A DNA stretch of 49,545 nt from Octopus bimaculoides (lineage: Eukaryota). The translations under genes were made by a program, and so were the position numbers. The stretch spans positions 78,332,879 to 78,382,423 of the forward strand of contig NC_068982.1 in NCBI RefSeq assembly GCF_001194135.2. Reading direction: 5' to 3'. Shown here piece by piece: positions 11,959 through 49,545 of the stretch (position 1 is its first letter; the number at the start of each line of letters is the position of its first letter). The notes under the pieces were generated by a model. The model saw only the letters and a program-made list of their open reading frames with translations. It did not search any database and was not told the origin of the DNA.

Positions 11959-12045
11959 CTAGAACACTCCAACAGGACGGTTCTGACCAAAATATTCCTC
12001 AAGGTATGCAACCCACTCTTTGACAGAAGCATCCGTTTTGGTAGG
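11959..12045 (-). CDS. terminal coding exon 12 (PTKTDASVKEWVAYLEEYFGQNRPVGVF*)
   Basis: ctcctttccattgcag acceptor, phase 0, TAG stop at 11959-11961. Confidence 0.88.
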   Translation of the reverse strand, partial: PTKTDASVKEWVAYLEEYFGQNRPVGVF

Positions 12046-15000
12046 CTGCAATGGAAAGGAGACTGTGGTTATACAGAGATGTGTTGTTATAGTAGTAGTA
12101 GTAGTAGTGGTAGTGGTAGTTGTGGTGGTGGTAGGAGGAGGAGGAGGAGCAGCAGCCCAACACTTTCACTTTAAAACTAACTGAATTGATTGGAAGTCAG
12201 TTGGATTGACTTACCTACAAACTGAAGCTGGGTTCTTGCTTAGAGAATGAAGTTAGGTCTCTTATGTACAGATTGAAGTAATCAGGGCATCTTACCTACA
12301 GACCTAAGTTGGGTGATTTGCCTACAGATCAAAGTAAGTTGGGTATCTTGCCTACAGACTGAGGTAAATTGGGTCTCTTACCTGTAAACTGAATTAAGTT
12401 GGGCAGCTTACTTATAGAATGAAATATGTTGGGTCTCTGACCTATAGACTGAAGTTGAGTACCTTATCTATAGACTGAAGTAAGTTAGGTGTCTTGTCAA
12501 TGGAACCAACAAGAGTGAGTTACACATACCAACTACTCAAATTAGTTACAAATGTGCAGTTCGACCTGGTCACTTTGTGATACACAAACATTCATAGCAA
12601 CCCCATACTCTGAAATGAGGTAAAATCTATAACAAATAATATTTAAAAAAACAACAAAAACTCACCGCAATATTGCCCTTCATTTTCACGTCTCCACTTC
12701 TCACAGAAAGAAGTGCAATATTTGGATGGTCAGCAGATGACAGCTGCAATGTGCATATAATGTTAGCATTCTTGCCAACAATAACACGCAGTCTGTTTAA
12801 GTGCTGTATCCAATCAGCTGGAAGTCTAAATAAAATAGAAGCCTCAACACATTACAACAATAAACAAGGCATGAGATTAATGTGATTGATCAATCATCAT
12901 CTGTTTAACACCCACTTTCCCAAGCTTGCATGTATCAGATAAGGTTTACTGAGAGATTTTCTACAACTGGATGTCCTTCCTGTCAACAACCCTCACCAAC
13001 CTTTCCAAGTAAAGTAATGTTGGCCAGGCAGGTTTTTCAAAGAGTGGAAATGAAAGACATCACTTGTTTAATGCTGACAAATCAAATCACGAATCTCACA
13101 CAATATCAAGACAAGCATACACAAACATTCATACATGCTGTATATATATATATTTACACTATGATATAAATATATATTTAAATTTTACCACAGCTGTTGT
13201 CTTTGTGTTTCAGAGCAAAAGTAGATAACTCTGCTCATTCCACTTTGCCTGGTTGACTCAAAAGTAGATCACTCTTATTTGAGTGGTTAAGAAGGACATC
13301 CAGAGCAATGATGGAAATGGTGGGTATGCAGGGAATGAGGGGTGGCAGTGGTGATATTTCCCTACTTTTCAGGTTATGGAGGTTGGGAGCTTATAGCATT
13401 TAGCCTCCCCTCTTGTCCAATATCAGCATCATGGGTCTTGCTGTGCCCCTTGTTCCCTGAAACCAAATCCCATCACTGATCCAGGTATGAAAACAAGTTC
13501 ACCAATCCAATAAAATCATCCACTTCACTCATCCAAGCATGGAAAATGGATGTAAAAAGAAAATGGAACAAAAGCAAAAAAAAAAAAAAGAAAAACAGTA
13601 GACATCAGAATAACAGGGAAAGTACAGAGTTAGTTTAAATAATAACACAAGAGTACATAGGTTGTTTAACCTTCTAGAAATAACAGCCAAATTTCCTTCA
13701 AATCACATTATGTTACATAGGTCTGCTTAACCAGAGTTTAAACATCATCATCATCATGTTTATCATCATCCAATAAAACAAGAACCATACCTTCCAATAT
13801 ATCTATTCTTTAACCCTTTAGCATTTAATCCAACCATATCTGGCCTAAATATTCAACTTGCTTTATGTTCAAACTGGCCAGATCTGGCCTCTCACACCTT
13901 TCCTAAAATGTCATTCTAAAAACAAAAAATTACATCAAGCATTACATGTTGTTGTTGGCACTCCGTCGCTTACGACGTCGAGGGTTCCAGTCAATCCGAT
14001 CAATGGAACAGCCTGCTCATGAAATTAACGTGCAAGTGGCTGAGCACTCCACAGACACGTGTACCCTTAATGTAGTTCTCGGGGATATTCAGCGTGACAA
14101 GGCTGACACTTTGAAATACAGGTACAACAGAAAAAGGAAGAAAGAGTGAGAGAAAGTTGAGGTGAAAAAGTACAGCAGGGTTCGCCACCATCCACTGCCG
14201 AAGCCTCGTGGAGCTTTAGGTGTTTTTGCTCAATAAACACTCACAACGCCAGGTCTGGGAATCGAAACCGCGATTCTACGACTGTGAGTCCGCTGCCCTA
14301 ACCACTGGGCCATTGCGCCTCCACAAGCATTACATACGACAGAGTAATCTGAATACTAAAGGGTTCAAGTTGTAGACTGTGTGATTTGAGATCACTTGGC
14401 TATTATTTCTAATATGAAAATAAGTTTACAAAGCCTGAATTGAAGGTAAATGATAAGAGATGGGGAAAGGGAAAAATAACGAAGAAATGAGTCAGAGATT
14501 TAAAAGGAGTTTATGATAAGAGAGAGGCAGAAGGAGGAAGAGAAGAACTAAAGAGAGAGGGAATGTCTTCTTTTAGTCTTTATTCTTTTGTCTTTTGTCA
14601 TCAGACTGCAACCATGCTGGAAAAATCACTCTCATGAAGGATTTAATTAGCCAGATTCATGAGGGATTTAATTAGTCAGATTCATGTCCTCTTTTCTATG
14701 TTTGCATGGATTGGACAGAGTTTATTGATGCTGACTGTCTATGGCTGGATGCCTTTGCTATCACCAACCCTCACCTGTTTCCAAGAAAGGTAATATTTCC
14801 TCATGGCTAGACATGTTTCCAGAGAATATTGAGAATGAATGACAGTGGTGCTCATTTATGACTATAATGCAAAGAGAAGACGAAGAGACATAAACACACA
14901 CCTTCACACACACACACACACACACAACAGGCTTCTCTCACTTTCCATCTACCAAATTCACTCACAAGGCTCCAGTTGTCTCAGAGCTGTGGTAAAAGAC

Positions 15001-18000
15001 AGTGCCACACAATGACACTGAACACAAGACCATGTAGTTGGGAGAAAAACGTCTTAGCTACACAGCCACACCTGCATCAAGTAAAAAAGAAATAGAATAT
15101 CTGACATCTGATGGCTAAACACACAGTAAACTATTTAAAATGTGAAAGTGAACAGACAGTAAATTGCTTATAAAGTGTTTCATATATGTATACACACAGA
15201 CACACACACAAATAAGCACATAAATACAAAACAAGGTGAAAAAATATATTACTGAAATACCAAAGGTAGAGTAATATACATTTTATTAAAGCCAAAAAAA
15301 ATCTTCATAAACTGTTACTTAGTTTCATGTTACCGTTCATCAGACAATTGTGATCATACCAAAATAAAAAATGATATATGATATGATCACATATTACATT
15401 ATAAATACCATCACAATTTTCATTTTAGTATGATCACAACTATCCAACGAATGGTAACGTGAAATCTTGAGTAACAGTTTGTAAAGATTTTTTTCAGCTT
15501 TAATATATATATTTTCTTTCATTCTTTTACTTGTTTCAGTCATTTGACTGCAGCCATGCTGGAGCACCACCTTAAAGAAATCGACCTCAGGACTTATTCT
15601 TTGTAAGCCTAATACTTATTCTATTGGTTTCTTTTACCAAACTGCTAAGTTACAGAGATGTAAACACACCATCAATTGTCAAGCAATGGTGGGGGGACAA
15701 ACACAGACACACACATACACATATATATGTGATGGGCTTCTTTCAGTTTCCCTTTACCAAATCCATTCACAAGGCTTTGGTTAACCTGATGCTATAGTAG
15801 AAGACACTTGCCCAAGGTACCATACAGTGGGACTGAACCCAGAACCATGTGGTTGGAGAAGCTTAGAAAGCAGCCAATGAAATTACAAAAATGAGGTGCA
15901 GGAGAGTGTCTACACAATGTAGAAGAAATGGGAATAAAGATGAGTTTTTAGGGCAATGAAGGGAAATCATGGTTAATAAGCAGTTTTACCTGTTCTGAAT
16001 ATCATTGATCTGTTCCTTCAAACTGGAATAATAGTGCCATCGATCTATGATGTTCTTTACACAAGAGGGTAAATTCTGGATTTTCTGAACATGTTCAATG
16101 CAATCAGTTATATAAACATCAGAATTGTTCACCTGTTGTGGCAAGAAGAAATAAAATTAGACATTTAAAACAAAAATAACTAAATGAATTCATTGAACAG
16201 GTTATAATTTTCCAGTTTGTTAATCTTTAACTTCATCTTTAGTATTGCTAAGGTGGAGCGCGAGGGCATGGGAGTTAGTTCACCCTGGGTAACACTTTTA
16301 TGGTAGGGCAGCAATTTTGGGTCTGCTGTATAAATTTGTATAAGGGTGGGTTAGTAGGAGACTTAAGAGCTTCCCCAGGTGCCATATCAATTATGTCATT
16401 GTTAACTTCATTATTAGATTATAGTTCATATTTACATATATTTAATCCATACTAGCATGGGTTAGATGAATGCATTCATAAAGCTTTGTTTTTCAGCCAG
16501 ATGTTATTCCTGTCACTAAGCTTTACTTATTTTTTAAGTAAAGGATCACTCACTTTCCATGTCTTTGATAGTGCAAATCCAGCTGAAGAGTTGTTGACTG
16601 GAGAAATTATGGCAACATTACTGATTGTAGCTCAGTGATGTTCAGAGAAATAAATAAATAAGGTCATGCACTCAGACATCATCATCATCATCATCCTTTA
16701 ATGTTTGTTTTCCATGCTGGCATGGGTTGGACAGTTTGACCAGAACTGGCAAGCCAGAGAGCTGCACCAGGTTCTAGTCTGATTTGGCTTGCTTTCTACA
16801 GCTGGACACCCTTCCTAATGCCAACCACTTTACAATGCGTGTCTAGGTGCTTTTAATGTGGCACCAGCATGAATGCTTTTACATGGCACTGACACAAGTG
16901 CTTTTTCTGTGACACTAGCAGACCAATCCTCTTCATCAGGAGATGTGGTCTTAACACTTCTGCTGTGGAGGAGTACAGTAAGACACCAGGTGTCTCGGTC
17001 CTTTGTCATCTCATCTGAAAGGTTCACATACATCGAATACATTATAAATTGTCCTATTGTAATATAGCTACCCAATATCTTATCTGAAACCTTTGGGATC
17101 AAGCATGTTTTGGAATCGAGAATTTTTCAGATTTTGGAAATGATAAATACACGATATTCATTCGGTATATTCTTGGTTATAAATCCTGACTCCAAAGAAT
17201 ACGCTTACATCCAGCCTACCACCAACTTTGAAAGTAAAATTCTGATTTGTATATTTCTTGACTGTAGTTTTGAGTCCATAGAAATACTATTACTGAATAT
17301 TGATACACCTGGCCTAGTAGCAGGGCATGTGAATGCTTTTGCCAACTAACCACAATTTTGAGGAAAATAGCTTTCATTCCTGTCTTTCTTTACTTTACTT
17401 GTATCTTTTACTTGTTTCAGTCATTAGACTGCAGCCATGCTGGGGCACTGCCTTGAAGAATTTTTAGTTGAATGAATCAACCTCAATACTTATTTTTTTT
17501 TAAAGCTTGTCACTTATTCTATCGTCCCCTTTGCTGAAGCACTAAGTTACAGAGACATAAACACACCAACACCAGTTGTCAAGTAGTGGTGGGGAACAAG
17601 CACACATACACATAATATGACAGGCTCCTTTCAGTTTCTGACTACCAAGTCCACTCACAAAGCTTTGGTCAGCCGGAGGCTACAGTAGAAGACACTTAGC
17701 CAAGGTGCCACACAGTGGGACTGAACCCGGAACCATGTGGTTGAGAAGCAAGCTTCTTTATTTCATTAAATTGGTCATGGAGACCATGCACAGAGTAAGA
17801 AGCTTGTGGGCTGGACGTAGACAAAATGAGATGAAATGAAAACATAATGATAAAGATGAGAGGGATGTCAGCGCCCACCGACCAACAAGCCCTCGAATAC
17901 AATTTTTCCTTTACAATCAAAAATATCAATACACAATTCAAAAATCAAGTTTCTTACCAGACAGACACACCTGCACCTATATGTCAAGCAACAACTTATA

Positions 18001-21000
18001 AGCCTCTCTTTTAACCTCTTCTGGTGAGTTGTAGTGCACCTGAGCACTATTATACAATAAGTTCATTATTATTACATCAGTGGCTAGCTAAGAATAATGT
18101 AAAAATACAGATTAAACAAGACACCTACATACCAAACACCTAGCAAAGTTCTGTAAACACACCCTAGTGAAAGTAATGCACCTTATTGTTCATTTGAGTT
18201 GTAAGTAAATACTTTAAATGATATTATAGTTTATTTGTATAATGATAAACTGGTAAATGAAGTGAGATAAAGATAGATTATAAAATTACTAGTGTAATGT
18301 CTAAGTTTGTTTGATGGCAAACATGATTTTTGGAGTGCAAATGACTTCCATTAGAATTGGAGTGCAGATGATTTCCATTTGGAATTTTGGATAAGAGATT
18401 GTGTACCTGCATTTTTTAACAACAACAAGAGATTTACCTGAACCTCTGACACCAGCATGGTACCATTCTGTGATTGTTTGAAGAAGAAAGTAACAAGGAG
18501 AGATGTACCACCATCTTGGGGTGCTTTCAGTTCAATTTGAACAGAATTCTTGTCATATTTTTGTAAACTGACACCTGTGAATGATTCATACATCTGATGC
18601 AGCTGTTGACTTCTGTGTAAAGATGGAGCAAGTGGAGAGTATTAAGTCAGAGACAGTAGGATGTAAGGTAAAAATGACAATGGAGACAGTGTGATGTATA
18701 AAGTAAACATGACAAAGGTGAGTGGAAAATATAACAAAAGAAGAAGGTTTTAGGACCAAAATTTTGTTTGCTTCAGAGATAAAATCTAATAGCATTAGCC
18801 TTGAAATATAACTGTTTTTAAATCAAGCACGCCAGAAATGTAGAGGAAAGAGCAAGGTGATTATATCAACCCCAATAGTTGACTGGTACTTTATCAACCT
18901 CAGAAGAGTGACAGGCAAACTAGACCTCAGCAGGATTTGAACTCAGTTCACTGATAACCAGAACTAATATGCAAGGTTGTCTATTTGACAGTCTGTGCCA
19001 ATTTGCCAAAACACTTTTGTTAACATATTCCTGTTGAGGTACATTCTGTTTGTTTCAGTTATGTGAAAATAATGAAGACTTTATGCAAATAACTTTTGAT
19101 GCCAATCTGCCTGAGACTGCCCAAATGTCTTGTTTTAAAGTGATCTAAAATAAAACCTTCCACAAAATTTCACATTAATTTATATCTTAAACCCCAGATT
19201 AATAATGAAATTGTTTTACTAAATTCTTCATTATTTTCAAAATTAATTGAAACAAAAATAGTTTATGTTAACAGAAATATGGTAACAAAAGGGTTAAGCT
19301 GGTGTTTGGCACATGAAATTTTGATAGAAGGTTTTAATTTAGATCACATTAAAAACAGGAACTTTGTAACAGAGAACCAGGGTTGGCCTTAGTCAGGTTT
19401 GTATCAAAAACAATAAAGTTACATCTAGACAAGGATACAATTCTGAAAAATCTTAAAAAGAAAAGGAAAAAAAAAGAAAAAAAATGATAAGTATAAGGCT
19501 CTGAATTAGTAAATTCTGAAAAATATTTTAAAATAAAATATATTTCTACGAAGAATTTTGAAAGATAAAGTTAAAATTTAAACCTACAAATTTAATTGCT
19601 TTTCCAATTTTTGATTCTGCGTTTGATATAGGTTTTCTTTCTGTGATAAAGTTTCTGTAAGTTGTTCACAGGATCCCTTCATATCTTCCAGTTTTATCTG
19701 GAGTTTACTCAAATTTTCCTTGCCATTCTGGCACATCATTTTGGCCGTCTCAATTTTGGAGAGCTGCACAACAACAATAAACAAAAACAGAGATAACAAC
19801 AAAAGCCAAACAATTCTTCATCATCATCATCGTCTTTTAACGTCCGCTTTCCATACTAGCATGGGTTGGACGGTTTGACTGAGGACTGGTGAAACCAGAT
19901 GGCTACACCAGGCTCCAATCTGATTTGGCAGAGTTTATACAGCTGGATGCCCTTCCTAACACCAACCACTCTGAGAGTGTAATGGGTGCTTTTACGTGCC
20001 ACCAGCACGAAGGCCAGTCAGGTGGTACTGGCAACGGCCACGCTCAAAATGGTGTATTTTATGTGCCACCTGCACAGGAGTCAGTTCAGCAGCACTGGCA
20101 ACGATCTCGCTCAAATGTCTTTACACATGCCATCCAGCACAAGTGCCAGGAAGGCGATGCTGGGCACAGGTATCATGACGATTTCGCTTTCCAGATGATA
20201 CTAAATATTTGCTTTAATGAGAATGCCTTGGGAGACTAGGGGTGGCCCACAATAACTCTGCCAGTGCAAGACCCTAGAAAAAAAAAAAAACATGTACACA
20301 CACACACACATACACATGGTTGTAAAACAAGGTGGAAGAAAATAACATTTGACTATCAAAGGGTGGATTAAATAATGTCTTACTGAAATTGAAAATCTTT
20401 ACAAACTGTTACTCAGAGTCTCATACAACTGATCATCAGCCAACTTTAATAGTCACTTCCCTATGTTTGTAGCTGGATGCCAACTAATATTTGTTTCCAC
20501 AAAATATAGGAAATAAACAACACTGCTTCTATAACAGTGACACTCATTTACAACTACCATGCAAAGCCAAGACATGAAGGCACAAACATATATACATATA
20601 TATACATACACACATACATATATGACAAGATCTTTTCAGTTTCAATCAACCAAATCCACTCACAAGGCTTTGGTCAGCCTAGCGCTATAGTAGAATGCAC
20701 TTGCCCAAGGTGCCTGAATACAAAACCATGTGGTTGGGAAGAAAACTTAATCTTCAGAGCCATGCCTATGCCTCACATCTCTTTCATTCATATTTTTTTT
20801 GTTTCAGTCATTTGACTGTGGCCTTGCTGGAGCACAACATCCATTTTCCATGCTGGCATAGGTTTAATGGTTTGACAGGAGCTGGCAAGTCAGAAGACTA
20901 TGCCAAGTTCTACTGTCTGCTTTTGCATGGTTTTTACAGCTGGATGGCCTTCCTAATGCTAATCACTTTACAGAGTGTGTATTGGGTGCTTTTTACATGA

Positions 21001-21963
21001 CACTAGCATCAGTGAGGTCACCAAATGATTTACAAGACAAGACCCCTCAATTGAGGGAGTAGCATTGAGAAAAGTGGCTTTGTGCCAGAGGAGGGTAATA
21101 CGAGTAGAGGGCTAGATATATAACTAATTTTACAAATTTTCCAAATGTATACATACCAAATCTTCATGGAGATAGAAATCACTGGCAGGAAGATGTTGTT
21201 CAAAGATTTCTTGAATTTTGTCAACTTTTTCTCGTTTCAACTTGCTGTATTGCTGAGACTAGGAGAGAAGAAAATATGAAACAACATTATAACTTTGCGG
21301 TAAATATGGTTTCAAATTTTGGCACAAGGCCAGTGATTTCGGGGGGAGGAAGTAAGTTGATTACATCCACCTCAATGTTCAACTGGTACTTTATTGACCC
21401 TGAAAGGATGAAATGCAAAATCGACCTTGGTGGAATTTGAATGACAGATAGCATACAATAAAAGTAACAGTAACAACAATAATCTTTTCTACAATAGGCG
21501 TAAGGCCTGAAATTCTGGGTGGAGGGAGGCTAGGCAATTGCATTGACCTCAGTGTTCAGCTGGTACATATTTCAGCAATCCCCGAATGGATGAAAAGCAA
21601 AGTCGATCTCAAATAGTAACAACAACAAGAATGGTTTTCCAACATACAGATGAGGGCAGAAACGTGGGGTAGATGGGAGGGAGAACAATGAATTAAATTA
21701 ACCTGAGTACTTAGTGCTTATTGTATTGACTTTTCAACGGTGAAAAGATATGTAGACATTTAAGTTCAGAACGTAAAGAGGCATCTAAATAACACGAAGA
21801 ATTTTGTGGTTGTTTCTCATTGCCTATGTCACACGTAGCAATAAAAGTAGTTAAAGCAAAAGAAAAAGCTTGAAAGAATTAAGAAAAATAACTCTGTAAA
21901 GATTTATTCTGAATTACCTCCCCTGAATTCTTCTTTTTAACTTTCGTTCCTAAAGACGCACAC

Positions 21964-22011
<48 letters not shown>

Positions 22012-27102: not shown

Positions 27103-27139
<37 letters not shown>

Positions 27140-30100
27140 GAGAATATACAAATAATAACAACAGACGAGGACAGGTGGTGTAAATAACAAAAGTATATAT
27201 TAGTATGACGCTCGGGAGTACGGAAAGTCTTTGACGTTTCGAGCTACGCTCTTCAACAGAAAGAATACGGAGACAAGGAGAAAAACACGGAGAAAAAAAA
27301 TTGAATAGTGTTCAGTCATGGTAATATTCCCCTTAGTCCTTCAAACATGAACAGCACAGTTGCCAGACATGTTTTCATGGAACATTGCAAATGAATGATA
27401 CTACTTGTATAACGGTGACATCTATTTACAAGTAGTGTGCAATGTCAAGACAATGAGACACGAATGCATTCTCACACAAGCACGTATGCGCATGCGTACA
27501 CACACATGCACACACACACAAAAACACACAAGTAATATATACAGAGAGGTGGTTTTTTTTAAGATACTTTGAAAATTTTTGAGATTTTGTGAATTGTTCC
27601 AGAAACATTTTCTTTGAGGTTTTTTTTTTTGAAGTTTATTAAGCTTTTAAAAATCTTTTCTTCAAGCAATTTTAATATCTGCTTACCTTAATCTCCAAAA
27701 CACTTGCATTAGATATTCCACAATCAGCATGGAGCTCATCAAATAGAAGCTCTTCTGACATCAACTGGTTGATTAGTCTGAAAGACAAAAATCAAAACAA
27801 TGAGAGGGCGGGGGAATTAGGAAATGTGTCACATTATTATATTATCGTTTATCACAATTAATGGAAGACTAAGTGATTATAATGTAGATGATGATGATTA
27901 TAGTGATGGTAAGGATAGCACTAACCAGAAAACTTATTACCATAAAATTGATGATGATAAGGAAAGTGATAGTGCTGAAAGGCAGGAGAACTATGATGGA
28001 TGGAATTTGTTGAGGCAGATTTTCTACAGCTGGATGCCATTCCCATTGCCAACCTGCAATTGTTTCCAAACAAGGTAACATTTTGCCAATTTGTAGCCAA
28101 AGTAATTTGCATAATTTAAACAAAAATGAGCTAAGAGAAAGACTCAGAGTGGCTAGTGGCATGTATTTGAACAACATAGACAAATACAGGTACATCAAAC
28201 ACCATACAACATAAAATTTTGATTTATTAAAATTATCTCTGCCTCCAAAGGACACGTCATAATTACTAAAAGGTAATTAAGATCAGCTTCACTTGAAAAG
28301 GGGAGATAATCTTAAGAATCAAGAATTCTTAATAGCATGCTATTTAAGGAAAAGGACAGGTTTAGACCATAAATGTTTTCTACTCTTTTTTGTATAAGTC
28401 TAGGTCCCTTGGGTACTGCAGATAAGGCCAAGCAATTGTCATGGTGATGATGGCTATCGAGCCAGAAACGAGTGGTTACTAACTGTCCTCTTATCTGCAG
28501 ACAGTAAGCTTGTCCTTTTCTTCAATGACATATCAACTTTGGAGAATTCTTGACTCTTGAGGTTATCTCTTCTGTGGAGGTGGTCATAATTGCTATTTGG
28601 TAATTATGATACATCCTCTAGAGTTGGAGATAATTATTTAACAAAGCAAAAATTAATGCTGTATGGTATTTGATATATGTTTAGTTTTATATATACACAC
28701 ACACATGTATATATATTCTTTTATTCTTTTACTTGTTTCACTCATTTGACTGCAGCCCTACTGGAGCACCACCTTGAAATGTTTTAGTTGAGCAAATCGA
28801 TTCCAGGGCTTTTTTGAGCCTAGCACTCATCCTATTAGTCTCTTTTGCTGAACCACTAAGTTACAGGGATGTAAATACACAAACACCAGTTGCCAAGTGG
28901 TGATGGGGGGGNNNNNNNNNNNNNNNNNNNNNNNNNNNNNNNNNNNNNNNNNNNNNNNNNNNNNNNNNNNGGGGGGGGGGGGGATAAACAGGAATACAAA
29001 GACTCACACAGATATGTAGTTCAAGTTTACAGAAAACAAAAGATGACAGGTGAAGGAACAACAAGCAGGTGTATTAGTTTAAAGCTCAGGAAAAATGGAA
29101 AAATGTTTGACGCTTTAAGCCTATGCTCTTTGACAAAAAGGATTAAGAGGAACAAAAAAAAAAAAACAGATAAAATATGTGTAGGGATTAACGGCTCAAC
29201 ATGCTGAACACAGATGTATGTATGTATGTATGTATGACGGACTTCTTTCAGCTTCTGACTATCAAATCCACTCACAAGGCTTTGGTCAGCCCAAGGCTAT
29301 AGTAGAAGACACTTCCCCAAGGTGCCAGAAACTAACATTACAACAGTTGAAGAAGTACAACAACCATTGTATTGTTGACATAGAAACTTGAAATTCTGTA
29401 TGTGAGTCTCCATAACCGTATCAGTCCTCTATTTCCAATGATACTGAGGTCTATCTCTTGTTGTCACATACACATATATATATTAGGTTCAGGAAAAAGT
29501 TTGTGTGCCATGTTAAAACAATGCTTTTTTATATATTTTTGTGGTGTGTGTGTTCACTCAGTTCATGTCATGTTCAATGGTGACTCACGGCATACAAACT
29601 TTTTCCTCTCAACCTAGTATATATATATATATATGATGGAGAGCACCAATTCCCAATGTAGTGTTAATTACATCAAAACTAGTACTTATATATATTGATA
29701 TTTATTTCAGAAAGATGAAAGTTAAAACTCCAATGGCATAGGAAACAAGACTGTAGGAGGACATTATCAAATAGCACAAGGTATTTTTTCTTTTAGCAAT
29801 AGTCTACAGGCCCTGACATCTGCCATTTTATGAGTAATTTTGTGTCTGTCTGTCTGTTTGTCCATCTGTCTACTGAATAACTTTCTGATTACTGTAGATA
29901 TGGGTGTGCAGTCATTTTTATTACATGCTTTTGTGTGTGTGTGTGTGTGTGTGTGTGCGTGAGAGAGAGAGAGAAAGTATATCTGTATATGTATGCTCTT
30001 GTTAAATAACTATGAGTGTTCCAAGTATGTATGTGTGTTCTTGTTAAATAACTATATGCTTGCTGTAGTTATTGTGTATATCTGCATGCGTATACATACA

Positions 30101-32679
30101 CACACACACAATTTTTGTTAGAATGTTTGTGTGTGAGTGTGTGTTTATGTTTGTGTGTTAGCCCTTGTTAAATAACTATGATCGCAGCAGGTATGTATGT
30201 GTGAGCTTTCATTTTTGTTAGAAAACTTGTGTGTGTGTGTGTTCCAGTAATGTTTGTCCACTTGGTATGTGCTCTACTGTGGACATTGAAAACATCCCAT
30301 TTACCCAAGTCAAGGTCAACTTGGAATCAATGATAATAACAGGAAGCATCATGATGGTGGGTAGTGGTAGGAGAGGGGAGAACAGAGGTGGACGTGAGTG
30401 AAGCTGGCAGAGTGGTGGTGGTTCAAGTGAAGCTGGTGGAGTGGGGGTTATGGTGGTTCTGCCTACCAAAAGCTGTTCTATTGATTCCATGGCACTGCTA
30501 TGTGTATTGGCTTTAAACAAACGAAGAATCCTGGTTGAGCAAACAGAGAGTTGCTTGTAATATTTTTATTTGCTGGGCTATAAAAGATACATTTTAACAG
30601 CAGGAAAAAAAGGGATGTGGTGATAGCCATGCTTGTACAGAGAGTAAAGTAAGTGGAACGGGGCCCCAGCAAGGAAATGAAACCTAATTGCAGAGTCAGT
30701 TTGCAGAGGAACTTACCTCCTGTACCTGGTATGTTACTAAATGTGTATACACGTATACACACACACACACAAGTGTGTGTAAGCATAAATAAAAACACAC
30801 GCACATATATAAGCATATACAGACTCACACACATGTACACACATGCACACACACACACATGTACACACATGCATACACACACACACACACAATTTTTAGC
30901 CAGCAAGTTTCACTGACAAAGCATTGGTGAATTGCAGCCAGGCAGCTCTGTATGTGTGTGTGTGAGAGAGAGAGAGAGAAAGAGAGGAGGAGGGAGGGAG
31001 AGAAAGGATGGGGAAGAGAGAGAGAGAGGGGGGGAAGAGAAAGAGAGTTGCAGCAATCCACAAGATTAATATTTAACTCCGTAATGGGTACAGTTGGATC
31101 ATTTTTGCAATGTTACCTGGATAGAGAGATGACCTATCCAGGGGTAGATTTCACTCTCACTCACTCAACAAGAAGCGATAATGGAATTAATAAGTGCAAA
31201 CACAACCATGTGGGTTTAGGTTTAAGCTCAGTGAATGACACCTTAGAAAAGTTTCTGCTACAGTGGCCTTGGAGTGTATGTGGGTGGGGGGGGGGCTTTT
31301 CAAAGATTTGTTTGACACCCACACCCTAACAAGATGAAATTTGGTTGATAGACACCAGTCAGGGGGACAACTTGTCTTCCTGAGTAGTTCTTAATCCAAA
31401 GCTCTCATTTAACACAAGTTGGCTTGTGGCTAACTGAACCTGTTAATTCCCACATTTTTTTTTTAATTAATAAATTTATTATCAGAAAACAGTTCTTTAT
31501 AATAATGCATCAATTCATTCTTGTTACGTTATCTTTTATTTGTTTCACTCATTGGACTGGGACCATGCTGGGTTCACCACCTTGAAGAATTTTTTAGTCA
31601 AATGAACTGACCCCAGTACTTTTCATTTTTAAAACCTGGTACTTATTGTATCAGTCTGTTTTGCTTAACTGCTAAGTTATGAGGCTGTAAACATACCAAC
31701 ACCAGTTGTCAAACAGTGGTGGGGTACAAAGACACAAAACACACACACACACAAGTAAGGGTTATAAACCTTATTAAGGGATAATAAATCCAATGAAAAT
31801 ACTGGTTAATTACCAATCCATAGATGATGTGTGTTCATGACACATGGTTCATCAATGCAATTGACTTTGAAATACCAGTTTCAACCTTATTACATGTCTC
31901 CTTAGTTAAAGTTACTCTCACTGGACTGATGAATTTAAGAAGAGTTAGCAAAGGTCACCAAATAATTTGTTTGCCGATTTCTATAAACACTACCTTCTCC
32001 TCCTGTGTTCGATTGAGGCCTTCTTTAATCAGCTCTTTTTCTATATATGCTATCAGTTAATGGTTTATATCCATTATCTCAATATGCATTTCTAATCAGT
32101 ATATCTTTACCACCTCTGAAGAGATTCATCTTATAATGATTTTAATTTCATAAATTAATTATCTAAAGATTACTGAATCGAAAGAGCTGTCAGAGATGTC
32201 ATCATATTTTATAATTAATAAATAATATTTCATGAATTACCTCTCCATTTTCTCCTTATTCTTTACATATATAAATAGATAGATAGATAGATAGATTTGT
32301 TGGCACTCTGTCGCTTACAACGTCGAGGGTTCCAGTTGATTCGATCAACGGAACAGCCTGCTCGTGAAATTAGCATGCGAGTGGCTGAACACTCCACAGA
32401 CACGTGTACCCTTAACGTAGTTCTCGTGGATAATCAATGTGACAATGTGTGACAAGGCTGACCCTTTGAATTACAGGCACAACAGAAACAGGAAGTAAGA
32501 GTGAGAGAAAGTTGTGGTGGAAGAGTACAGCAGGGTTCACCACTATCCACTGCCGGAGCCTCGTGGAGCTTTAGGTGTTTTCGCTCAATAAACACTCACA
32601 ACGCCCGGTCTGGGAATTGAAACCGCGATCTTATGACCGCGAGTCCGCTGCCATAACCACTGGGCCATTGTGCTTCCAC

Positions 32680-32716
<37 letters not shown>

Positions 32717-35700
32717 CATAGATAGATATATGTAAGCTCCAAGGATTGAGGCATAGGAAGAGAGTGAGCTTCAAGCAATCCGTAGAAAATATTAAAAAAC
32801 AATTTTCAGGAATAATAGTGGTTTAATGGGACAGAAAGTTATGGAATTTTTCATATCTAAGTACGGTAAACTGAAAAAAATTACTTTATATTTCACAGTA
32901 GGCAGCCAGGTTTACCGGGTATGTGAATCCTCCGTGTGTTAACATGGGCTTCCTAACAACAAGGTAAACTTCATTTAATCAAGATACCCTTGGCCTGAAG
33001 AGTAGCCTGTGGTATACATCTCACTTGGATATTTACCACTTCTGAGGTTCTGTCTCCTACTAAACATATGTAGCCCTGATCTTATCTACTCCATTCCATA
33101 ATTCTTGTATGTCATCATCATCATGTATATATATATATATACGACAGGCTTCTTTCAGTTTCTGCCTACCAAACCACTTACAAGGCTTTGGTCAGCCCAA
33201 AGCTATAATAGAAAACATTTGCCCAAGTGGGACTGAACCAGAACCCAGATTGGGAAAGCAAACTTCTTACAACTCAGCCATTCCTATCCATTCTGACAGA
33301 TTGAAAGGTATCTGATTGCTGTTATTTTTTGTCAACAGAGAATGCCTTCACCCTTTAGATCAGAGGTTAAGCTTTTTAGGCCACCACCTCCCTCTCATGG
33401 TCCTCAGCACCTCCACTCCTATTTTTATGTATACTCTCTACTCTTACTCTTTTACTTGTTTCAGTCATTTGACTGCGGCCATGCTGGAGCACCGCCTTTA
33501 GTCGAGCAAATCGATCCCAGGACTTATTCTTTGGAAGCCTAGTACTTATTCTATCGGTCTCTTTTGCCGAACCGCTAGGTTACGGGGACGTAAACACACC
33601 ACCATCGGTTATTAAGCGATGTTGGTGGGGACAAACACAGACACAAACATATACAAACACATACATATATATATATATATATATAAACAATATATGAGTA
33701 TATGAATATATATGTACATGTATGTACATACCTTCATCTACATGTACACACAGATACATAACTGGGTACATGACGTGGCAAAAGAACATGGACAAAATGA
33801 TAAACAAGGTACAACAAACAGGCAAGCCACATAGAAACATCTCCTTCATCAGCTGCCACCATTAAAACACCGGCGTTAAAACACAAATTAAATCGTTTTC
33901 GTGAAGGATAGTGGCGGACGGAAAACAAGACAAGAAAATGAAACGGTATATACGACAGGCTTCTTTCAGTTTCCGTCTACCAAATCCACTCACAAGGCTT
34001 TGGTCGGCCCGAGGCTATAGCAGAAGACACTTGCCCAAGGTGCCACGCAGTGGGACTGAACTCAGAACCATGTGGTTGGTAAGCAAGCTACTTACCACAC
34101 AGCCACTCCTGCGCCTATAAATATTTTACTAATTTATATATACTACGAATCATTTGATATTTAATATAATATTATATAGTTTGTATACAATACAAACTAC
34201 ATGAATTCACAGCGTCCCCCAATCCACTGGCTTTCTCCTAATGCCTCCTTTTTCTCTACCACCCCCTTAGACAGCACTCACCTGGACCATCTCAACACCC
34301 ANNNNNNNNNNGGGGGGGGGAGTAGCATCCACTTCGAGAACCTATGCTTTAGATAATGTGTATATTCATGACACATGATTCATCAAAGCAGAGTTTCAAC
34401 CTTATTACATGTCTCTTTAGTTAAAGTTACTCTCACTGGACTGATGAATTTAAGAAGAGTTAACAGAGGTCAGCAAATAATTTGTTTGCTAAACAAGACC
34501 ATGTGCTCTCCTTAGATCATTGATCCAAGGGTAGAAGACACTTACCCAAAGTGCCACACAGCAGAACCGGACTAAAAACCATGTGGTTGAGAAGCAAACG
34601 TCTGAGCTGCACCTACCTTTATGACTAATAAAATATGGCAGAATTCTGGTTTAAGCACCCCATATCTTATATATTTTTTTAGAATTTTCAGAAAATTTTT
34701 GCAAATTTGTGTTCTACATTTGGGAATTTATACAATTATGAAAAAAAAAAAAATGTTTTCCGTGTGTGATTTCAGAGCGATTCGGGTGTTATTTTTAGTA
34801 CGTCTCATGACCACATGATACCTTCTTCATTTCTTTGTCACTCTGACATGTATTGATGTTTTTCAATATTTTTCTCCCCATAAACACATTTAAAGGAATG
34901 ATGATGCACCGAAGGGTGGTCCATTGCTGGGATTTAAGCAAAATATTCAGACTGTCCAAATTTTAAACACTGATTAAAAACAAAAAAATTTGAGAAAGAG
35001 TGAAACTTTTAGGATTTATGGGGGTGATGGCTTCAAAAATTTTATGAGGGATTATATGGGATGCTTAAACCAGAATTCTGCCAAATATATACCTAGTGGG
35101 TGAAATATTAATAATTATTTTTATGGTCTTACTGAAATTTTTTTTTTGAAGCACAAATCCTGAGAAAGCCCCTTGGGACAACACCTGGAAGAATTTTGCA
35201 CCACTATTCCATATCTCTAAGTCGACAAAAGCAATGTAGAATCCACTGCTTAGACTAGAGACCCAACAAAACATAATCGTATACATTCCCAAAACATGCA
35301 ATAGGTTTGAACATAGAATAACATTTTAATAATTTATTGTTCTACTCAGCTATCTTTCTTCTATATCAGTGATTCTTCTCCTGATTGGTAGCATACCTGT
35401 GGGGAACAATAACCTTACAAAAAAAGGATGTGTGACTGAGGTGGTGGGGCAATGTCAAAGAAGTGCTGGGTATTCAGAGGGGGTGGAATTTTTCATAGAA
35501 AGAAAATATTTAACCCTTTAGCATTCAAACCAGCCATATCAGACCCAAATATTCTAATTGTTTTATGTTCAAACTGATCAGATCAAGCTTCTCACACCTA
35601 CCCGACAAATGTCATTCTAAAAATAAACGATCTCAAAGCTACAAGACAATGCATAATTAATTCAAAACAAGTTGAATAAATAAATATTTCATTTGACTGA

Positions 35701-38700
35701 GTAATCTGAATGCTAAAGGGTTGAAGCAGGTTCAATACTTAATCTTTTTAAACACATTTTTAAAATCATCATAGTCAAGATTAGAATACTTATGTTATAG
35801 ACATTGTGCTATCAGTGAGCAGAAAATATGGCTGATAATGCACTAATGTTATATGTAATTTCATTATAAAAGAAATAGTAAAGTTATATCAAATCTTGGT
35901 GTAGTAAGTGATCACCTTCTTTTTTTTTTTTAGTAATCTCAACACAAATTGACCAAAGAAGGCACTAATCCTTGCAAATATCTAAAAAGAGGTACATACT
36001 GGATAGATTAGTGTTAGAAAACTTGGGTAATAAAATCAATAAACCCCTAAACAAAATTAACAGCATTTTTGCTTAAAATAATGTTTCCCATTTTTTTTTT
36101 ATCAAAATCTAGGGAGGGATCATTAGTAAACCACCATTTGGTGAAGGGGAAGGGCACTAGGTTACAAAAGGTTGATAACCACTGATCTACATGATTGTCA
36201 AACTGTTTACTAATTAGTGTAACAGGAGAACTCATTAAGTTTAATAGCAGCAAGTAGAGAATCTAATATTTCAGTTTTTATATCCCTCTGAGAGAGTCAC
36301 TTATGTTGTTGGCATGGGATAATTAGTACACAATATGTGCATATGTATGTGTGTGTATGTATGTATATATATATGATATGTTTATTGTATGTATGTGTGT
36401 GCGCGTGCATATATCGTGTAGGAGTGTGGCTTACTAGAATCAGGCTACATATCTACTAATTACCAACCAAAATCTGAAACCAGTTACACAACTCACGGTT
36501 TGTCATGTTCTCTTTCACCCAAATTAGGAATAAATCTATACTAAGCATTTTAAATCAACTCAACTAAAATTCTCTCTAATAATATCCAAAACATTACAAG
36601 ATATCTCCCAGATTCACAGGAATTAAACCATTCCACCTACACAAAAATATCAACTATTAATATTTATATGTTGAGTCACAATTTTAACATAAGCACTGAA
36701 TATTTGTAAACACTATTTCAGAATCATGAAATGACAAACCATCTCTAAGTGATCCACATTTTGTATGTTTCCCAACCACATGGTTTTGGGTTCAATCCCA
36801 CTGTATAGCACCTTCCTTAGGCAAGTATCCGCTATAGTTCTAGGCTGGCCCAAACATCAAGAGTGGATTTGGTCGACAAAAATTGAAAGCCCATTGTATA
36901 CGTATATGCATGTGTATATATGTGTAAGTGTATGTGTGCATGTTTGTATGTGTATATAAGTATGTATATGTGTGAATGTGTGTACGTGTGTATGCATGTG
37001 TATGTATGTGTGTATATGCATATGACAAAAATTGTGTTACACAGTGTTATCAAAGTTTAGAATTTCTGTCTGCATCTTCTGGTGCTGTGGTGAATAGAAA
37101 ATAGGTTCCGGGACAACAAAGATTGGATTGCATGACTATAACATGAGACTGTAATATATGGTGAGGTTAGGTGGTTGTGTCTGAGGCCCTCATCCCTCAG
37201 CTATGTTCATTCTTTGATATGCTATCAAACAAGAAATTCCAAGAGTACTTACTTACAGTGTGCTCCTATTTGGAGTACACAGAGAGGTTAGATATCTGCA
37301 GGGAAGATATTACCCACTGATAAATAACTGCCAAGATAGACTGGAATAAAGAAATTATAGATGCCACAAGCAAAAGAACCAATGAAGAGAGAAGAAAGAA
37401 CATTGTGGAGCAACACAAGATTTGGTTGGATAAAAAGAAAATTCGTTCTATAGAACATGGCGTGGTTGTGTGGTAAGAAGGTTGCTTCTCAACCACATGG
37501 TTCTGGGTTCAGTTCCACTGCATGACACTTTGGAGAAGTGCCTTCTACTATAGCCTTGAGCTAACTAAAGTCTTGTGAGTGGATTTGGTAGATAGAAACT
37601 GAAAGAAGCTCATTGTGTATATGTGTGTGTGTCTTTGTGTCTGAGTTTGTCTCCCAATACTGCTTGACGATCAGTGTTGCTGTGTTTACATCCCTGTAAC
37701 TTAGCAGTGTGGCAAAAGAGACCAATAAAATAAATACCAGGCTTAAAAAGAAAATAAGTACTGGGATTGATTAGTTCAACTAGAATTCCCCAAGGTGGCA
37801 TCCCAGTACAGCTGCAGTCTAATGACTGAAACAAGTAAAAGAGAAAGGATAAAGATGGTGCCATAGATGTCTTTGTCAACTTAACAAGACTTTTAACAAG
37901 GATCGATGCAATCCTGTCAAGTGTGCAATAAAAACATCGAATGTAGTTGAAAGACTTGTTCCAGACATTAAAAATAGTGATTTTGGCATATGAAAGGGTT
38001 TCTGTCAAATCTGAGTCTTCAGCAAATTTCTTTTTTAGAATTACAGACAAATTTAGAACTGGATGTTTATGAGAAACTTGTTTGCTGAGGACTAGTTGTC
38101 ACAAATAGTAAAATAACCCTTTAAAGGAATCTCTATGTAGTTGTTCAACATGTTAGAAATAATAGTTAAATCTCCCTCAATTCACACACTACTATTTTAC
38201 ATAAGAAAAGGAAACATTACACAATGTAGACATTTAAATCATTCTCAAAACGATGAGACAATCAGAGCTTTTGATTATAGTTCAACTCAATCAGGACTGA
38301 CCTGGTATTAAATAATAGCCCTCTTAAATATGTATCACAGCTTACACATGGAGATGATCTGTCTGCCTGTCTGTTTCTCTCTCTCTCTCTCTCTCGCTCT
38401 CTAAAAGATCAACCAATTTCTTATACTGCAGTTTGGAATGTTATATGATCTATTCACATCTATATTTTATTCTTCCTACTTTTAACACTGATTAGCATCA
38501 AATTCTTCGTTAATTACTATCCCCACTAAACCTAGATAGACACACACTTCACCATATATCTATATATCTACGATATAAATCTTTTTCCTCCTCCTCCTCC
38601 TCCTGACTGGCTGGCTGGTCTAGATATATAGACGTTATCAAAGAGGAACTAGGTTAACAAGAGTTAATAAAGCGTACTATTTTATCACCATCATGACTTA

Positions 38701-39160
38701 CTTCTGCAAAAGCAAACCTCGCTCTATCGCAACATCTGGGTAATCATTTCCTCGTGTATACAAAACAGTGTCACAACAGCTGAACTCCTTTTACATACAC
38801 GCACACACAAAATCATCGTGCCTTTCTCTTTCCCCCCTCCCCACTCCTCCCCACTCATTGCCTCTTCTGTCACCTCCCAGTTTATATGACAGTTGGCAAG
38901 TCTGAAAAACACGTTTTTCGCCTCTCCTTGACTTTTTCACCCCGGATGGCGTGACTATTCACCTTCAAACCACCACCACCATCACCGAATACGGCAGCCG
39001 CCAGCACCACCAGTGCCTTTCTTCGTGAGTAAATAGAAAAATAACAAACCTGGCTTCCCAAGACGCCACCAACCTCACATATACATACCCCACCCGCTCT
39101 TCTTTCTAATCTAGACATGTGACAAGACAAGTCAGTTGTTCTTCGTCCAGTCTTTCCCAT
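11959..39160 (-). CDS. ZWINT: 12-exon gene, Zwint-1-like kinetochore protein (coiled coil + tandem RWD-like C-terminus), about 428 aa; 5' exons tentative
   Basis: Hand-spliced join of 39089-39160, 38702-38787, 37257-37295, 27687-27777, 26465-26573, 24907-24990, 23246-23310, 19588-19763, 18438-18612, 15990-16132, 12666-12825, 11959-12045 = 1287 nt with one open frame, GT-AG introns and matching phases. SKNLASQLEARLLLLKFLATKDKELLDPI resembles human ZWINT DKLLCSQLQVADFLQNILAQEDTAKGLDPL (recalled, not aligned). The gene is well supported; the family name is an inference. Confidence 0.6.
12200..12500. repeat. intronic minisatellite, about 10.5 units of 25-30 nt
   Basis: Consensus GTTGGGTMTCTTACCTAYAGACTGAA(GTAA), read unit by unit; lies in intron 11. 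Confidence 0.85.
12666..12825 (-). CDS. exon 11, RWD-like domain 2 (LPADWIQHLNRLRVIVGKNANIICTLQL...KGNIA)
   Basis: ttctattttatttag acceptor, GCG|gtgagt donor, phase 2/0. Confidence 0.9.
13814..14363. mobile_element. piggyBac-type MITE interrupted by a SINE
   Basis: TTAA|CCCTTTAGCATT ... AATACTAAAGGG|TTCA; the uninterrupted relative is at 35514-35720. Confidence 0.8.
13948..14324 (-). mobile_element. full-length tRNA-derived SINE family C with 12-bp TSD
   Basis: Head GTGGAGGCGCAATGGCCCAGTGG (A box)...GGTTTCGATTCC (B box); TSD CAAGCATTACAT at 13936-13947 and 14324-14335. Confidence 0.85.
15285..15504. mobile_element. Penelope-like inverted terminal repeat with hammerhead-like core
   Basis: Imperfect arms of about 80 bp; the minus strand of the left arm reads CTGATGA-ACGGTAACAT-GAAAC. 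Confidence 0.55.
15990..16132 (-). CDS. exon 10 (VNNSDVYITDCIEHVQKIQNLPSCVKNIIDRWHYYSSLKEQINDIQN-R)
   Basis: tttcttcttgccacaacag acceptor, AG|gtaaaa donor, phase 0/2; helical end of RWD1 and linker helix. Confidence 0.9.
17076..17312. mobile_element. pogo/Tigger-like MITE remnant
   Basis: cttatctgaaacctttgggatcaagcatgttttggaatcgagaatttttcagattttggaa resembles Tigger4/Zombi-type ends (from memory). Confidence 0.35.
18438..18612 (-). CDS. exon 9, start of RWD-like domain 1 (SQQLHQMYESFTGVSLQKYDKNSVQIEL...LLVTFFF...LVSEVQ)
   Basis: catctttacacag acceptor, CAG|gtaaat donor, phase 2/0; helix followed by alternating beta-strand pattern. Confidence 0.9.
19588..19763 (-). CDS. exon 8, coiled coil (LSKIETAKMM...QKLEKQLN-L)
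   Basis: ttgttgtgcag acceptor, TT|gtaggt donor, phase 0/2, heptad-like L/K/E/Q composition. Confidence 0.9.
22179..22547 (+). mobile_element. near full-length tRNA-derived SINE family B (most abundant repeat here)
   Basis: ggctgtgtggtaagaagcttgcttctcaaccacatggttctgggttcagtc head, internal (TG)n, shared tail. About 20 further full or partial copies, e.g. 9230-9590, 15515-15860, 17395-17757, 33440-34115, 40680-41130 (-) and 37458-37850, 47217-47795 (+). Confidence 0.85.
23246..23310 (-). CDS. exon 7 (FINLHEKMIILADKVTAVKAK)
   Basis: tttttctctcag acceptor, AAG|gtaaga donor, phase 1/0. Confidence 0.9.
24907..24990 (-). CDS. exon 6 (GTKLKELKELSENLAEKINNLIPELSQ-R)
   Basis: ttctattcaatttcag acceptor, A|gtaaat donor, phase 1/1, coiled-coil-like. 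Confidence 0.9.
26465..26573 (-). CDS. exon 5 (DKRSASKNLASQLEARLLLLKFLATKDKELLDPICY-D), Zwint-like N-terminal motif
   Basis: ttttgttgttcag acceptor, G|gtaaga donor, phase 0/1. Confidence 0.9.
26742..27070. mobile_element. hAT-type MITE with perfect 8-bp TSD
   Basis: TIRs CAGTGGTTCTCAAAC / GGTTGAGAACCCCTG; TSD AGTTAGAG at 26734-26741 and 27071-27078. Confidence 0.9.
27130..27320 (-). mobile_element. Penelope-like element end with degenerate minimal hammerhead
   Basis: Minus strand CTGTTGA-A-GAGC-gta-GCTC-GAAAC-GTC-aaa-GAC at about 27224-27259. Confidence 0.5.
27687..27777 (-). CDS. exon 4 (LINQLMSEELLFDELHADCGISNASVLEIK)
   Basis: ttttgtctttcag acceptor, AAG|gtaagc donor, phase 2/0. Confidence 0.88.
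32297..32679 (-). mobile_element. second full-length SINE family C copy, inserted in a (GATA)n tract
   Basis: Colinear with 13948-14324 along its whole length; flanked by agatagatag on both sides. Confidence 0.85.
35514..35720. mobile_element. piggyBac-type MITE
   Basis: TTAA|CCCTTTAGCATT ... AATGCTAAAGGG|TTGA, perfect 12-bp TIR. Confidence 0.85.
37257..37295 (-). CDS. exon 3, 39 nt (YLTSLCTPNRST-L)
   Basis: tcttccctgcag acceptor, CT|gtaagt donor, phase 2/2, matching exons 2 and 4. Confidence 0.65.
38702..38787 (-). CDS. putative exon 2 (EFSCCDTVLYTRGNDYPDVAIERGLLLQ-K)
   Basis: Strong donor AA|gtaagt in phase 2, open frame, joins exon 3. The acceptor (gtatgtaaaag) is weak. Confidence 0.55.
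39089..39160 (-). CDS. putative exon 1 (MGKTGRRTTDLSCHMSRLERRAGG)
   Basis: ATG at 39160, donor GGG|gtatgt in phase 0, which matches exon 2. An alternative phase-0 donor AAG|gtgaat near 38962 lies in the same ORF. Confidence 0.35.
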
Positions 39161-44605: not shown

Positions 44606-44711
44606 NNNNNNNNNNNNNNNNNNNNNNNNNNNNNNNNNNNNNNNNNNNNNNNNNNNNNNNNNNNNNNNNNNNNNNNNNNNNNNNNNNNNNNNNNNNNNNN
44701 NNNNNNNNNNN

Positions 44712-49528: not shown

Positions 49529-49545
49529 ATATATGTGTGCATATA

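Follow-up and report, generated by a model that had tools for sequence, protein, structure and literature searches.

In the Knl1-Mis12-Ndc80 (KMN) network of the outer kinetochore, Knl1 has a small partner, Zwint-1, known as Sos7 in fission yeast, Kre28 in budding yeast and ZWINT in human. We analyzed a 49,545-nucleotide stretch of the Octopus bimaculoides genome (RefSeq assembly GCF_001194135.2, contig NC_068982.1, positions 78,332,879 to 78,382,423; hereafter the window), in which positions 11959-27777 of the minus strand very probably hold ten coding exons of the Zwint-1 orthologue of this species. An earlier reading made from the letters of the window alone (the sequence-only reading) had proposed here a hidden gene of 12 exons, encoding a Zwint-1-like protein that keeps a tandem RWD tail.

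The closest described systems are known from comparative and structural work. Zwint-1 was found to be similar to double-RWD proteins, and its double RWD was predicted to heterodimerize with Knl1, the CENP-O/CENP-P heterodimer serving as structural model for this presumed pairing (Tromer et al. 2019). Models of frog and chicken ZWINT contain tandem RWDs, which were lost in human ZWINT, while a single RWD is predicted in Kre28 (Polley et al. 2024). The same study proposed that ZWINT and KNL1 are paralogues and showed that ZWINT depletion lowers KNL1 at the kinetochore. The background given in the sequence-only reading, a tandem RWD predicted in many Zwint-1 orthologues and missing from the human protein, is as stated in these two papers. 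van Hooff et al. 2017 (PMC5579357) provide curated orthologue groups of kinetochore proteins as supplementary FASTA files.

Sequence profiles and a structural model together argue strongly that the octopus protein is a Zwint-1 orthologue that has retained its tandem RWD tail, and they speak against both Knl1 and CENP-O/P. Its predicted architecture comprises a short N-terminal helical region with a Sos7-type motif, two long helices and two RWDs, at residues ~217-310 (RWD-N) and ~313-385 (RWD-C). On this assignment, the octopus protein is the ancestral, full-length form of Zwint-1, and mammalian ZWINT is a truncated derivative.

An unnamed protein family across animals

The gene is already annotated in RefSeq as LOC106868412, an "uncharacterized protein" on the minus strand with isoforms X1 (407 amino acids) and X2 (391 amino acids); it is unnamed rather than hidden. 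We found no mention in the literature of the LOC106868412 locus or of any cephalopod Zwint. Octopod homologues in the database number three, each labelled "uncharacterized": LOC106868412 of O. bimaculoides, LOC115232421 of O. sinensis and one from Argonauta hians. O. sinensis isoform X2 (P0005) has no record as a called gene.

Word-indexed homologue searches, with the single protein or with a three-sequence profile, reached octopods only; with a 39-sequence profile they added Saccoglossus alone, because coiled-coil words swamp the candidate list. An exhaustive HMMER search with the octopod profile returned 44 proteins at E < 1e-3, mostly of ~400 amino acids and collinear over their full length. 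Their sources include scallop, limpets, mussels, abalone, Aplysia, Lymnaea, the annelid Owenia, the brachiopod Lingula, Nematostella, the centipede Strigamia, two echinoderms, Saccoglossus and Trichoplax, with one representative cluster per species among those named. The octopus protein shares 15-23 % identity with non-cephalopod members; the sequence-only reading had described the family as very divergent and often left uncharacterized.

The conservation of the family peaks not in the coiled coil but in the C-terminal ~175-190 amino acids, which carry the signature AIDW..(E)..LRV.VG..G.IVCTL..P..YP..G.I.L ... L..W..YLE..F. In the 39-sequence alignment, D314 is invariant and W315, W374 and L378 are nearly so. 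Database names of members include uncharacterized, myosin-11-like, paramyosin, cingulin-like and early endosome antigen 1-like, to which RefSeq and UniRef add "myosin heavy chain, muscle" and "Centromere protein F-like". The names taken from known proteins, as given to P0010, P0012, P0017, P0021, P0027 and P0023, stem from coiled-coil similarity and appear to be wrong.

In RWD-C, the conserved P..YP..G loop has lost its "YP" in the octopods and in P0009, a Logan-derived relative; the octopus reads SSA--DHPN here (exon 12666-12825). This two-residue deletion occurs in no other member of the alignment (columns ~160-168).

Sequence similarity to Zwint-1 and Sos7

The Pfam family matched by most members is PF20882 (Sos7), found in 7 of the 39 sequences; in the four of these that were inspected, all 75 positions of the model are matched, at residues ~45-135. 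Two members, P0023 from Saccoglossus and P0038 from Trichoplax, are identical to entries in the file Zwint-1.fa of van Hooff et al. 2017. As a non-circular test, we rebuilt the family profile without both of them and searched it against 17 curated Zwint-1, 10 CENP-O and 9 CENP-P sequences (Z=100,000). Thirteen of the 17 Zwint-1 sequences scored 33-288 bits, among them amphioxus (267), Trichoplax (161), Capsaspora (95), Mortierella (64 and 50), Cryptococcus (60), Sos7 (50, collinear throughout), two choanoflagellates (48), Yarrowia (35), Debaryomyces (33) and Mucor (33). Schistosoma (21 bits) and mouse (14 bits) stood at the low end. All 19 curated CENP-O/P sequences remained below 10 bits. Three animal proteins of the curated Zwint-1 group, Saccoglossus SKOW012488, Trichoplax TRIADDRAFT_54081 and Branchiostoma BFLO046808, which scored 161-288 bits, have a length (~350-470 amino acids) like that of the octopus protein and show the same features in the same order: the N-terminal motif, a long coiled coil and the C-terminal AIDW...LRV.G..G.I.CTL...W..YLE. 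The cephalopod proteins differ from this group in the missing "YP" of the RWD-C loop.

Profile-profile comparison agreed. With hhalign, the family matched non-metazoan Zwint-1 at 99.2 % (E 3.6e-19, 277 columns) and fungal Zwint-1 alone at 98.6 %, and the N-terminal part of the family profile matched non-metazoan Zwint-1 at 96.8 %. Full-length similarity to Zwint-1 was therefore stronger than to the other kinetochore RWD proteins compared, CENP-O and CENP-P matching at 27 % and 51 %, both over the RWD region only.

A motif of the Sos7 type, LKF.Y.E..TK..FL, precedes the coiled coil. Here Sos7 FTRLKFSYIEQGTKERYLRAILDD is aligned with the family consensus "kelKnkfiqletkllllkylakdee", and the core of this consensus, "lKnkfiqletkllllkyl", is placed on "RLKFSYIEQGTKERYLRAIL" of Sos7 and "KLKFNFIELETKSAFLMHV" of Capsaspora; the octopus version is SKNLASQLEARLLLLKFLATKDKELLDP. 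This is the motif (SQL...FL...LDP) that the sequence-only reading had taken as a pointer to Zwint-1. From the motif, the alignment with Sos7 runs collinearly through the coiled coil; Sos7, at 264 amino acids, ends ahead of the RWDs, whereas the Capsaspora alignment continues into the first RWD, and Capsaspora, Mortierella and Cryptococcus all reach RWD-N. The human protein (O95229; PDB 8PPR/8Q5H context) resembles the octopus one in its presumed function as Knl1 partner, by analogy, and, by eye, in motif register (SQLQVADFLQNILAQEDTAKGLDP in human, SQLEARLLLLKFLATKDKELLDP in octopus); it differs in having 277 amino acids and no RWD domains.

Predicted structure of the tandem RWD

An AlphaFold2 model from three sequences was too poor to use, with a predicted local distance difference test score (pLDDT) of 53. 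The 39-sequence alignment yielded a model with a mean pLDDT of 82, exceeding 90 over most of residues 221-380. In the 391-residue isoform, helices are predicted at 3-14, 18-50, 63-131 and 136-216; the long pair, which would form the long coiled coil, has a pLDDT of ~70-90. Over roughly the last 175 residues follow two predicted RWD folds, four strands and two helices at 218-310 and four strands and one helix at 313-384 (topology bbbb-aa / bbbb-a).

Compared with the PDB using Foldseek, this model retrieved kinetochore RWD proteins as its top 14 matches, 12 of them with probabilities of 0.87-1.00. They include Spc25 (8ppr_G, 3vz9_B, 2ve7_B), CENP-O (7pkn_O, 7qoo_O, 7pb8_O), Mcm21, CENP-P and Ctf19, and the CENP-O alignments cover 200-220 columns, that is, both RWDs. 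At the sequence level, the full-length profile touches Spc25 (E 5.5e-7), Spc105 (E 2.2e-4), human KNL1 (E 3.3e-4) and Csm1 in the PDB. The model and Foldseek thus point to a C-terminal tandem RWD, as the sequence-only reading had proposed; its Zwint-1 identification likewise agrees with the curated members of the family and with the profile scores. Two of the checks that it had suggested, a search with Zwint and Sos7 profiles and a structure prediction of the protein alone, came out on its side.

Conflicting evidence and alternative explanations

Several results weigh against this assignment. The Pfam scan of the octopus protein alone matched no family, and its relatives reach the Pfam Sos7 family only at 16-20 bits, short of the gathering score of 27.3. 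In the rebuilt-profile search Kre28 scored 1.4 bits, and no direct profile link to mammalian ZWINT was detectable (human 16 bits, E 0.02; hhalign 4 %). Searches of the PDB with the N-terminal profile gave coiled-coil noise and no ZWINT match, and phmmer with the single protein of the sequence-only reading also gave only coiled-coil noise. Long coiled coils inflate sequence scores, pure coiled-coil noise reaching ~26 bits at best. Sequence-level support for the RWDs is weak: the RWD-only profile found nothing significant in the PDB (Spc25 at E 0.94), so the full-length match to Spc25 is driven largely by its coiled coil. Support for the RWD assignment comes from the predicted fold, together with the weak hhalign matches to CENP-O/P. 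KNL1 RWDs are absent among the 50 Foldseek matches listed. As to mammalian ZWINT, the similarity test is not decisive because accepted Zwint-1 members fail it too: against the curated non-metazoan Zwint-1 set, mammalian ZWINT itself reaches only 27 % in hhalign.

We weighed four other explanations, none of which we consider likely. The best of them is that the family is a distinct one of coiled-coil and RWD proteins, paralogous to Zwint-1 and not a partner of Knl1, the true octopus Zwint-1 being another gene. Orthology here rests on profile scores and a curated set rather than on a phylogenetic tree or a proteome-wide search in octopus, and the failure of the profile to reach mammalian ZWINT would fit such a paralogue. 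This explanation is nevertheless improbable, given that each named species has one cluster, whose length and architecture do not change from Trichoplax to hemichordates, that the curated Zwint-1 proteins of Saccoglossus, Trichoplax and amphioxus are members or top matches, and that Sos7 and Capsaspora match collinearly over the whole length.

Less probable still, and close to refuted, is that the protein is an octopus CENP-O or CENP-P, inner-kinetochore proteins in which an N-terminal coiled coil likewise precedes a tandem RWD. The fold and order of the two RWDs are alike, CENP-O, Mcm21, CENP-P and Ctf19 all stand among the top 14 Foldseek matches, and both families gave the weak hhalign matches over the RWD region described above; the PDB, however, contains no solved RWD-bearing Zwint-1 that Foldseek could have preferred. 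CENP-O/CENP-P form a separate orthologous group, part of the constitutive centromere-associated network (CCAN) of the inner kinetochore, and membership in it was not found: their curated sequences stay below 10 bits where Zwint-1 reaches 33-288, and the N-terminal family profile matches them at <1 %. The helical part of the octopus protein, at ~215 amino acids, is roughly twice as long as theirs, and Saccoglossus carries separate curated CENP-O and CENP-P genes beside its family member.

A short Knl1 paralogue, or a fragment of Knl1, is about equally improbable. The family profile touches Spc105 and human KNL1 in the PDB, one member matches Pfam Knl1_RWD_C, and ZWINT and KNL1 are held to be paralogues in the literature. 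Against this, the octopus gene is complete, with its own start and stop and 391-407 codons' worth of protein, and Saccoglossus has separate Knl1 entries in the curated files (as well as a separate Spc25). The octopus protein differs from Knl1/Spc105 in this small size and in having no MELT, RVSF, SILK or KI motif, and the exclusion of Knl1 by the sequence-only reading was correct in this respect.

A generic cytoskeletal coiled-coil protein, as suggested by relatives named myosin-11-like, paramyosin or cingulin-like and by matches of the PDB profile search to myosin-11 and similar coiled-coil proteins (~26 bits), is refuted by the Zwint-1 profile scores and by the best-conserved part being a globular C-terminal 175 amino acids with a predicted RWD fold rather than coiled coil, and the matched myosin heavy chains have ~2,000 amino acids against ~400 here; we give it next to no credence.

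Gene model

A tblastn search of the window with the 428-residue protein of the sequence-only reading placed all pieces on the minus strand. When all possible junction positions were searched, each of its 11 junctions had exactly one frame-keeping GT..AG solution, and nine of its 12 exons match the RefSeq protein exactly, the sequences being identical wherever they overlap. The 12-exon model therefore stood in most of its parts and failed in two: its exons 1-3 are unsupported, and it skipped a 102-nucleotide exon. The proteins of O. bimaculoides, O. sinensis and Argonauta all contain the residues that this conserved exon encodes, and it is flanked by a pyrimidine-rich AG acceptor (ttcttctctcctAG) and a GTATGT donor. 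Once it is added and the start is moved to M72 of the 428-residue protein, where isoform X2 begins, the corrected ten-exon coding sequence yields a translation identical to isoform X2, with GT-AG borders at each of its nine introns. The acceptor-proximal first 16 nucleotides of the exon at 27777 are coding only in isoform X1. The features are collected in Table 1.

Table 1. Features of the Zwint-1 candidate locus in the window, in order of transcription
Feature	Positions	Strand	Exon in the sequence-only reading	Basis or remark
Proposed exons 1-3	37257-39160	-	1 (39160-39089), 2 (38787-38702), 3 (37295-37257)	Unsupported as coding sequence
Probable 3' end of alternative non-coding first exon of X2	39049-39072	-		Homology to the O. 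sinensis X2 MVACREAR exon
Assembly gap, 10 N	34302-34311			Intronic
Assembly gap, 59 N	28912-28970			Intronic, between 37257 and 27777
Coding exon, X2 start ATG at 27761-27759, MSEELLFDELH...	27687-27761	-	4 (27777-27687)	
Coding exon, conserved N-terminal Zwint/Sos7-type motif SKNLASQLEARLLLLKFLATKDKELLDP	26465-26573	-	5 (26573-26465)	Junctions, homologues, Sos7 alignment
Coding exon, coiled coil	24907-24990	-	6 (24990-24907)	Junctions, homologues, coding sequence
Coding exon, coiled coil	23246-23310	-	7 (23310-23246)	Junctions, homologues, coding sequence
Coding exon of 102 nt, 34 amino acids, SQQYSKLKREKVDKIQEIFEQHLPASDFYLHEDL	21157-21258	-	missed	Homologous proteins
Coding exon, second long helix	19588-19763	-	8 (19763-19588)	Junctions, homologues, coding sequence
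Coding exon, end of coiled coil and predicted RWD-N beta strands (218-263)	18438-18612	-	9 (18612-18438)	Junctions, AlphaFold2 model
Coding exon, predicted RWD-N helices	15990-16132	-	10 (16132-15990)	Junctions, AlphaFold2 model
Coding exon, predicted RWD-C beta sheet, D314 and W315 in LPADWIQHLNRLRVIVGKNANIICTLQL	12666-12825	-	11 (12825-12666)	Junctions, alignment, AlphaFold2 model
Last coding exon, predicted RWD-C C-terminal helix (W374, L378) and stop codon	11959-12045	-	12 (12045-11959)	Junctions, alignment, model, coding sequence

The two isoforms differ at their 5' ends. Isoform X1 begins MEIKEIAEVN, on an exon ~58.9 kb upstream of the next one and thus ~37 kb beyond window position 49545; a search for this exon in the readable sequence of the window found nothing. 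The intron between these two exons contains several large assembly gaps, and O. sinensis has the same layout with an intron of ~52.8 kb. The 71 N-terminal residues that the sequence-only reading placed before M72 occur in no homologue. In O. sinensis, the counterpart of exon 1 has an insertion of one codon, that of exon 2 is interrupted by an in-frame stop (EFSCCDTVLYTRGNDYPDVAI*RDLLLQK), and exon 3 has no orthologous alignment in the gap-free locus. Most of this upstream stretch is ~91 % identical in DNA between the two octopuses, with no sign of constraint at the protein level.

The same region probably supplies the alternative first exon. O. sinensis X2 starts MVACREAR, encoded adjoining the counterpart of exon 1, and the homologous positions 39072-39049 of the window read LVASWEAR, without an ATG. 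They are followed by a donor (CAG/GTTTGT, 39050 being the last exon base) in phase with the exon at 27777, and the simplest reading is that an alternative first exon probably ends at 39050. The lack of an in-frame ATG in this exon of O. bimaculoides would explain why MSEE is the start of X2, and the ATG at 39160 would be an upstream one, read in another frame. The latter ATG (MGKTGRR..., 39160-39050, minus strand), which lies upstream of the probable first-exon donor and in the other frame, is conserved in O. sinensis (MGKTGRKRTTDL...). If a transcript starts upstream of it, it would open an upstream reading frame that ends inside the exon at 27777 and overlaps the main start codon.

Other features of the window

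Positions 1959-49545 of the window correspond to O. bimaculoides chromosome CM046602.1 (GCA_001194135.2) in reverse orientation, with 100 % identity apart from runs of N. The window has a G+C content of 37 % and five N runs, three of which (28912-28970, 34302-34311 and 44606-44711) have identical lengths in the chromosome-level GCA_001194135.2 and are not closed there. The first two of these fall within intron 3 of the sequence-only reading (37256..27778), clear of every exon. No coding sequence appears at the gap region in the O. sinensis locus, which is free of gaps, or in any homologous protein, so the gaps are intronic and the reading frame does not depend on continuity across them.

Rfam and tRNA scans of the window found nothing. 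On the plus strand, positions 623-1095 form an open reading frame that encodes a zinc knuckle of the CCHC type (CYICGERGHMKTKC; Pfam zf-CCHC, 23.7 bits against a gathering score of 20.8); it runs into the gap at 1096-1608 and is probably a gag-like retroelement fragment cut off by that gap. The last intron of the gene contains a tandem repeat at 12305-12495, with a 30-bp unit, ~6.5 copies and 70 % match. An interspersed repeat at ~37459-37851, just upstream of the unsupported exon 3, matches the 90-kb O. sinensis locus at more than 25 places, in both orientations and with 70-80 % identity.

Proposed function and significance

What is established for KNL1-ZWINT, Spc105-Kre28 and CENP-O/P suggests, by analogy, how the octopus protein may act. 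Its long helices would pair in parallel, as a coiled coil, with the helical region at the C terminus of octopus Knl1, and its two RWDs would pack against the tandem RWDs of Knl1 in a heterodimer like that of CENP-O/P. Such a Zwint-1/Knl1 heterodimer would stabilize Knl1 and help the Knl1 complex to dock on the Mis12 complex.

The general picture of the kinetochore is unchanged by our results, because Tromer et al. 2019 and Polley et al. 2024 had already predicted this architecture for non-mammals. What is new is the functional assignment of an uncharacterized gene and of a largely mislabelled invertebrate family, together with a corrected gene model. The octopus gene left "uncharacterized" by RefSeq and UniProt gains a functional name, and by extension so do ~40 invertebrate proteins that are now unnamed or misnamed after myosin, paramyosin or cingulin. 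The family also adds lophotrochozoan examples of the ancestral tandem-RWD Zwint-1, which can be used for modelling the Zwint-Knl1 RWD heterodimer; human offers no access to this heterodimer, since its ZWINT has no RWDs. Nematostella has no Zwint-1 entry in the 2017 curated set, yet its protein P0012 is a member of the family and fills a gap in the tables of kinetochore presence and absence.

More broadly, we see about even chances that one unnamed, animal-wide family represents full-length ancestral Zwint-1, with the RWD-C of cephalopods remodelled by loss of the YP loop. If so, the RWD interface between Zwint and Knl1 may differ in cephalopods, and "absences" of Zwint-1 in comparative kinetochore surveys, such as that of Nematostella in 2017, would be artefacts of annotation and not losses.

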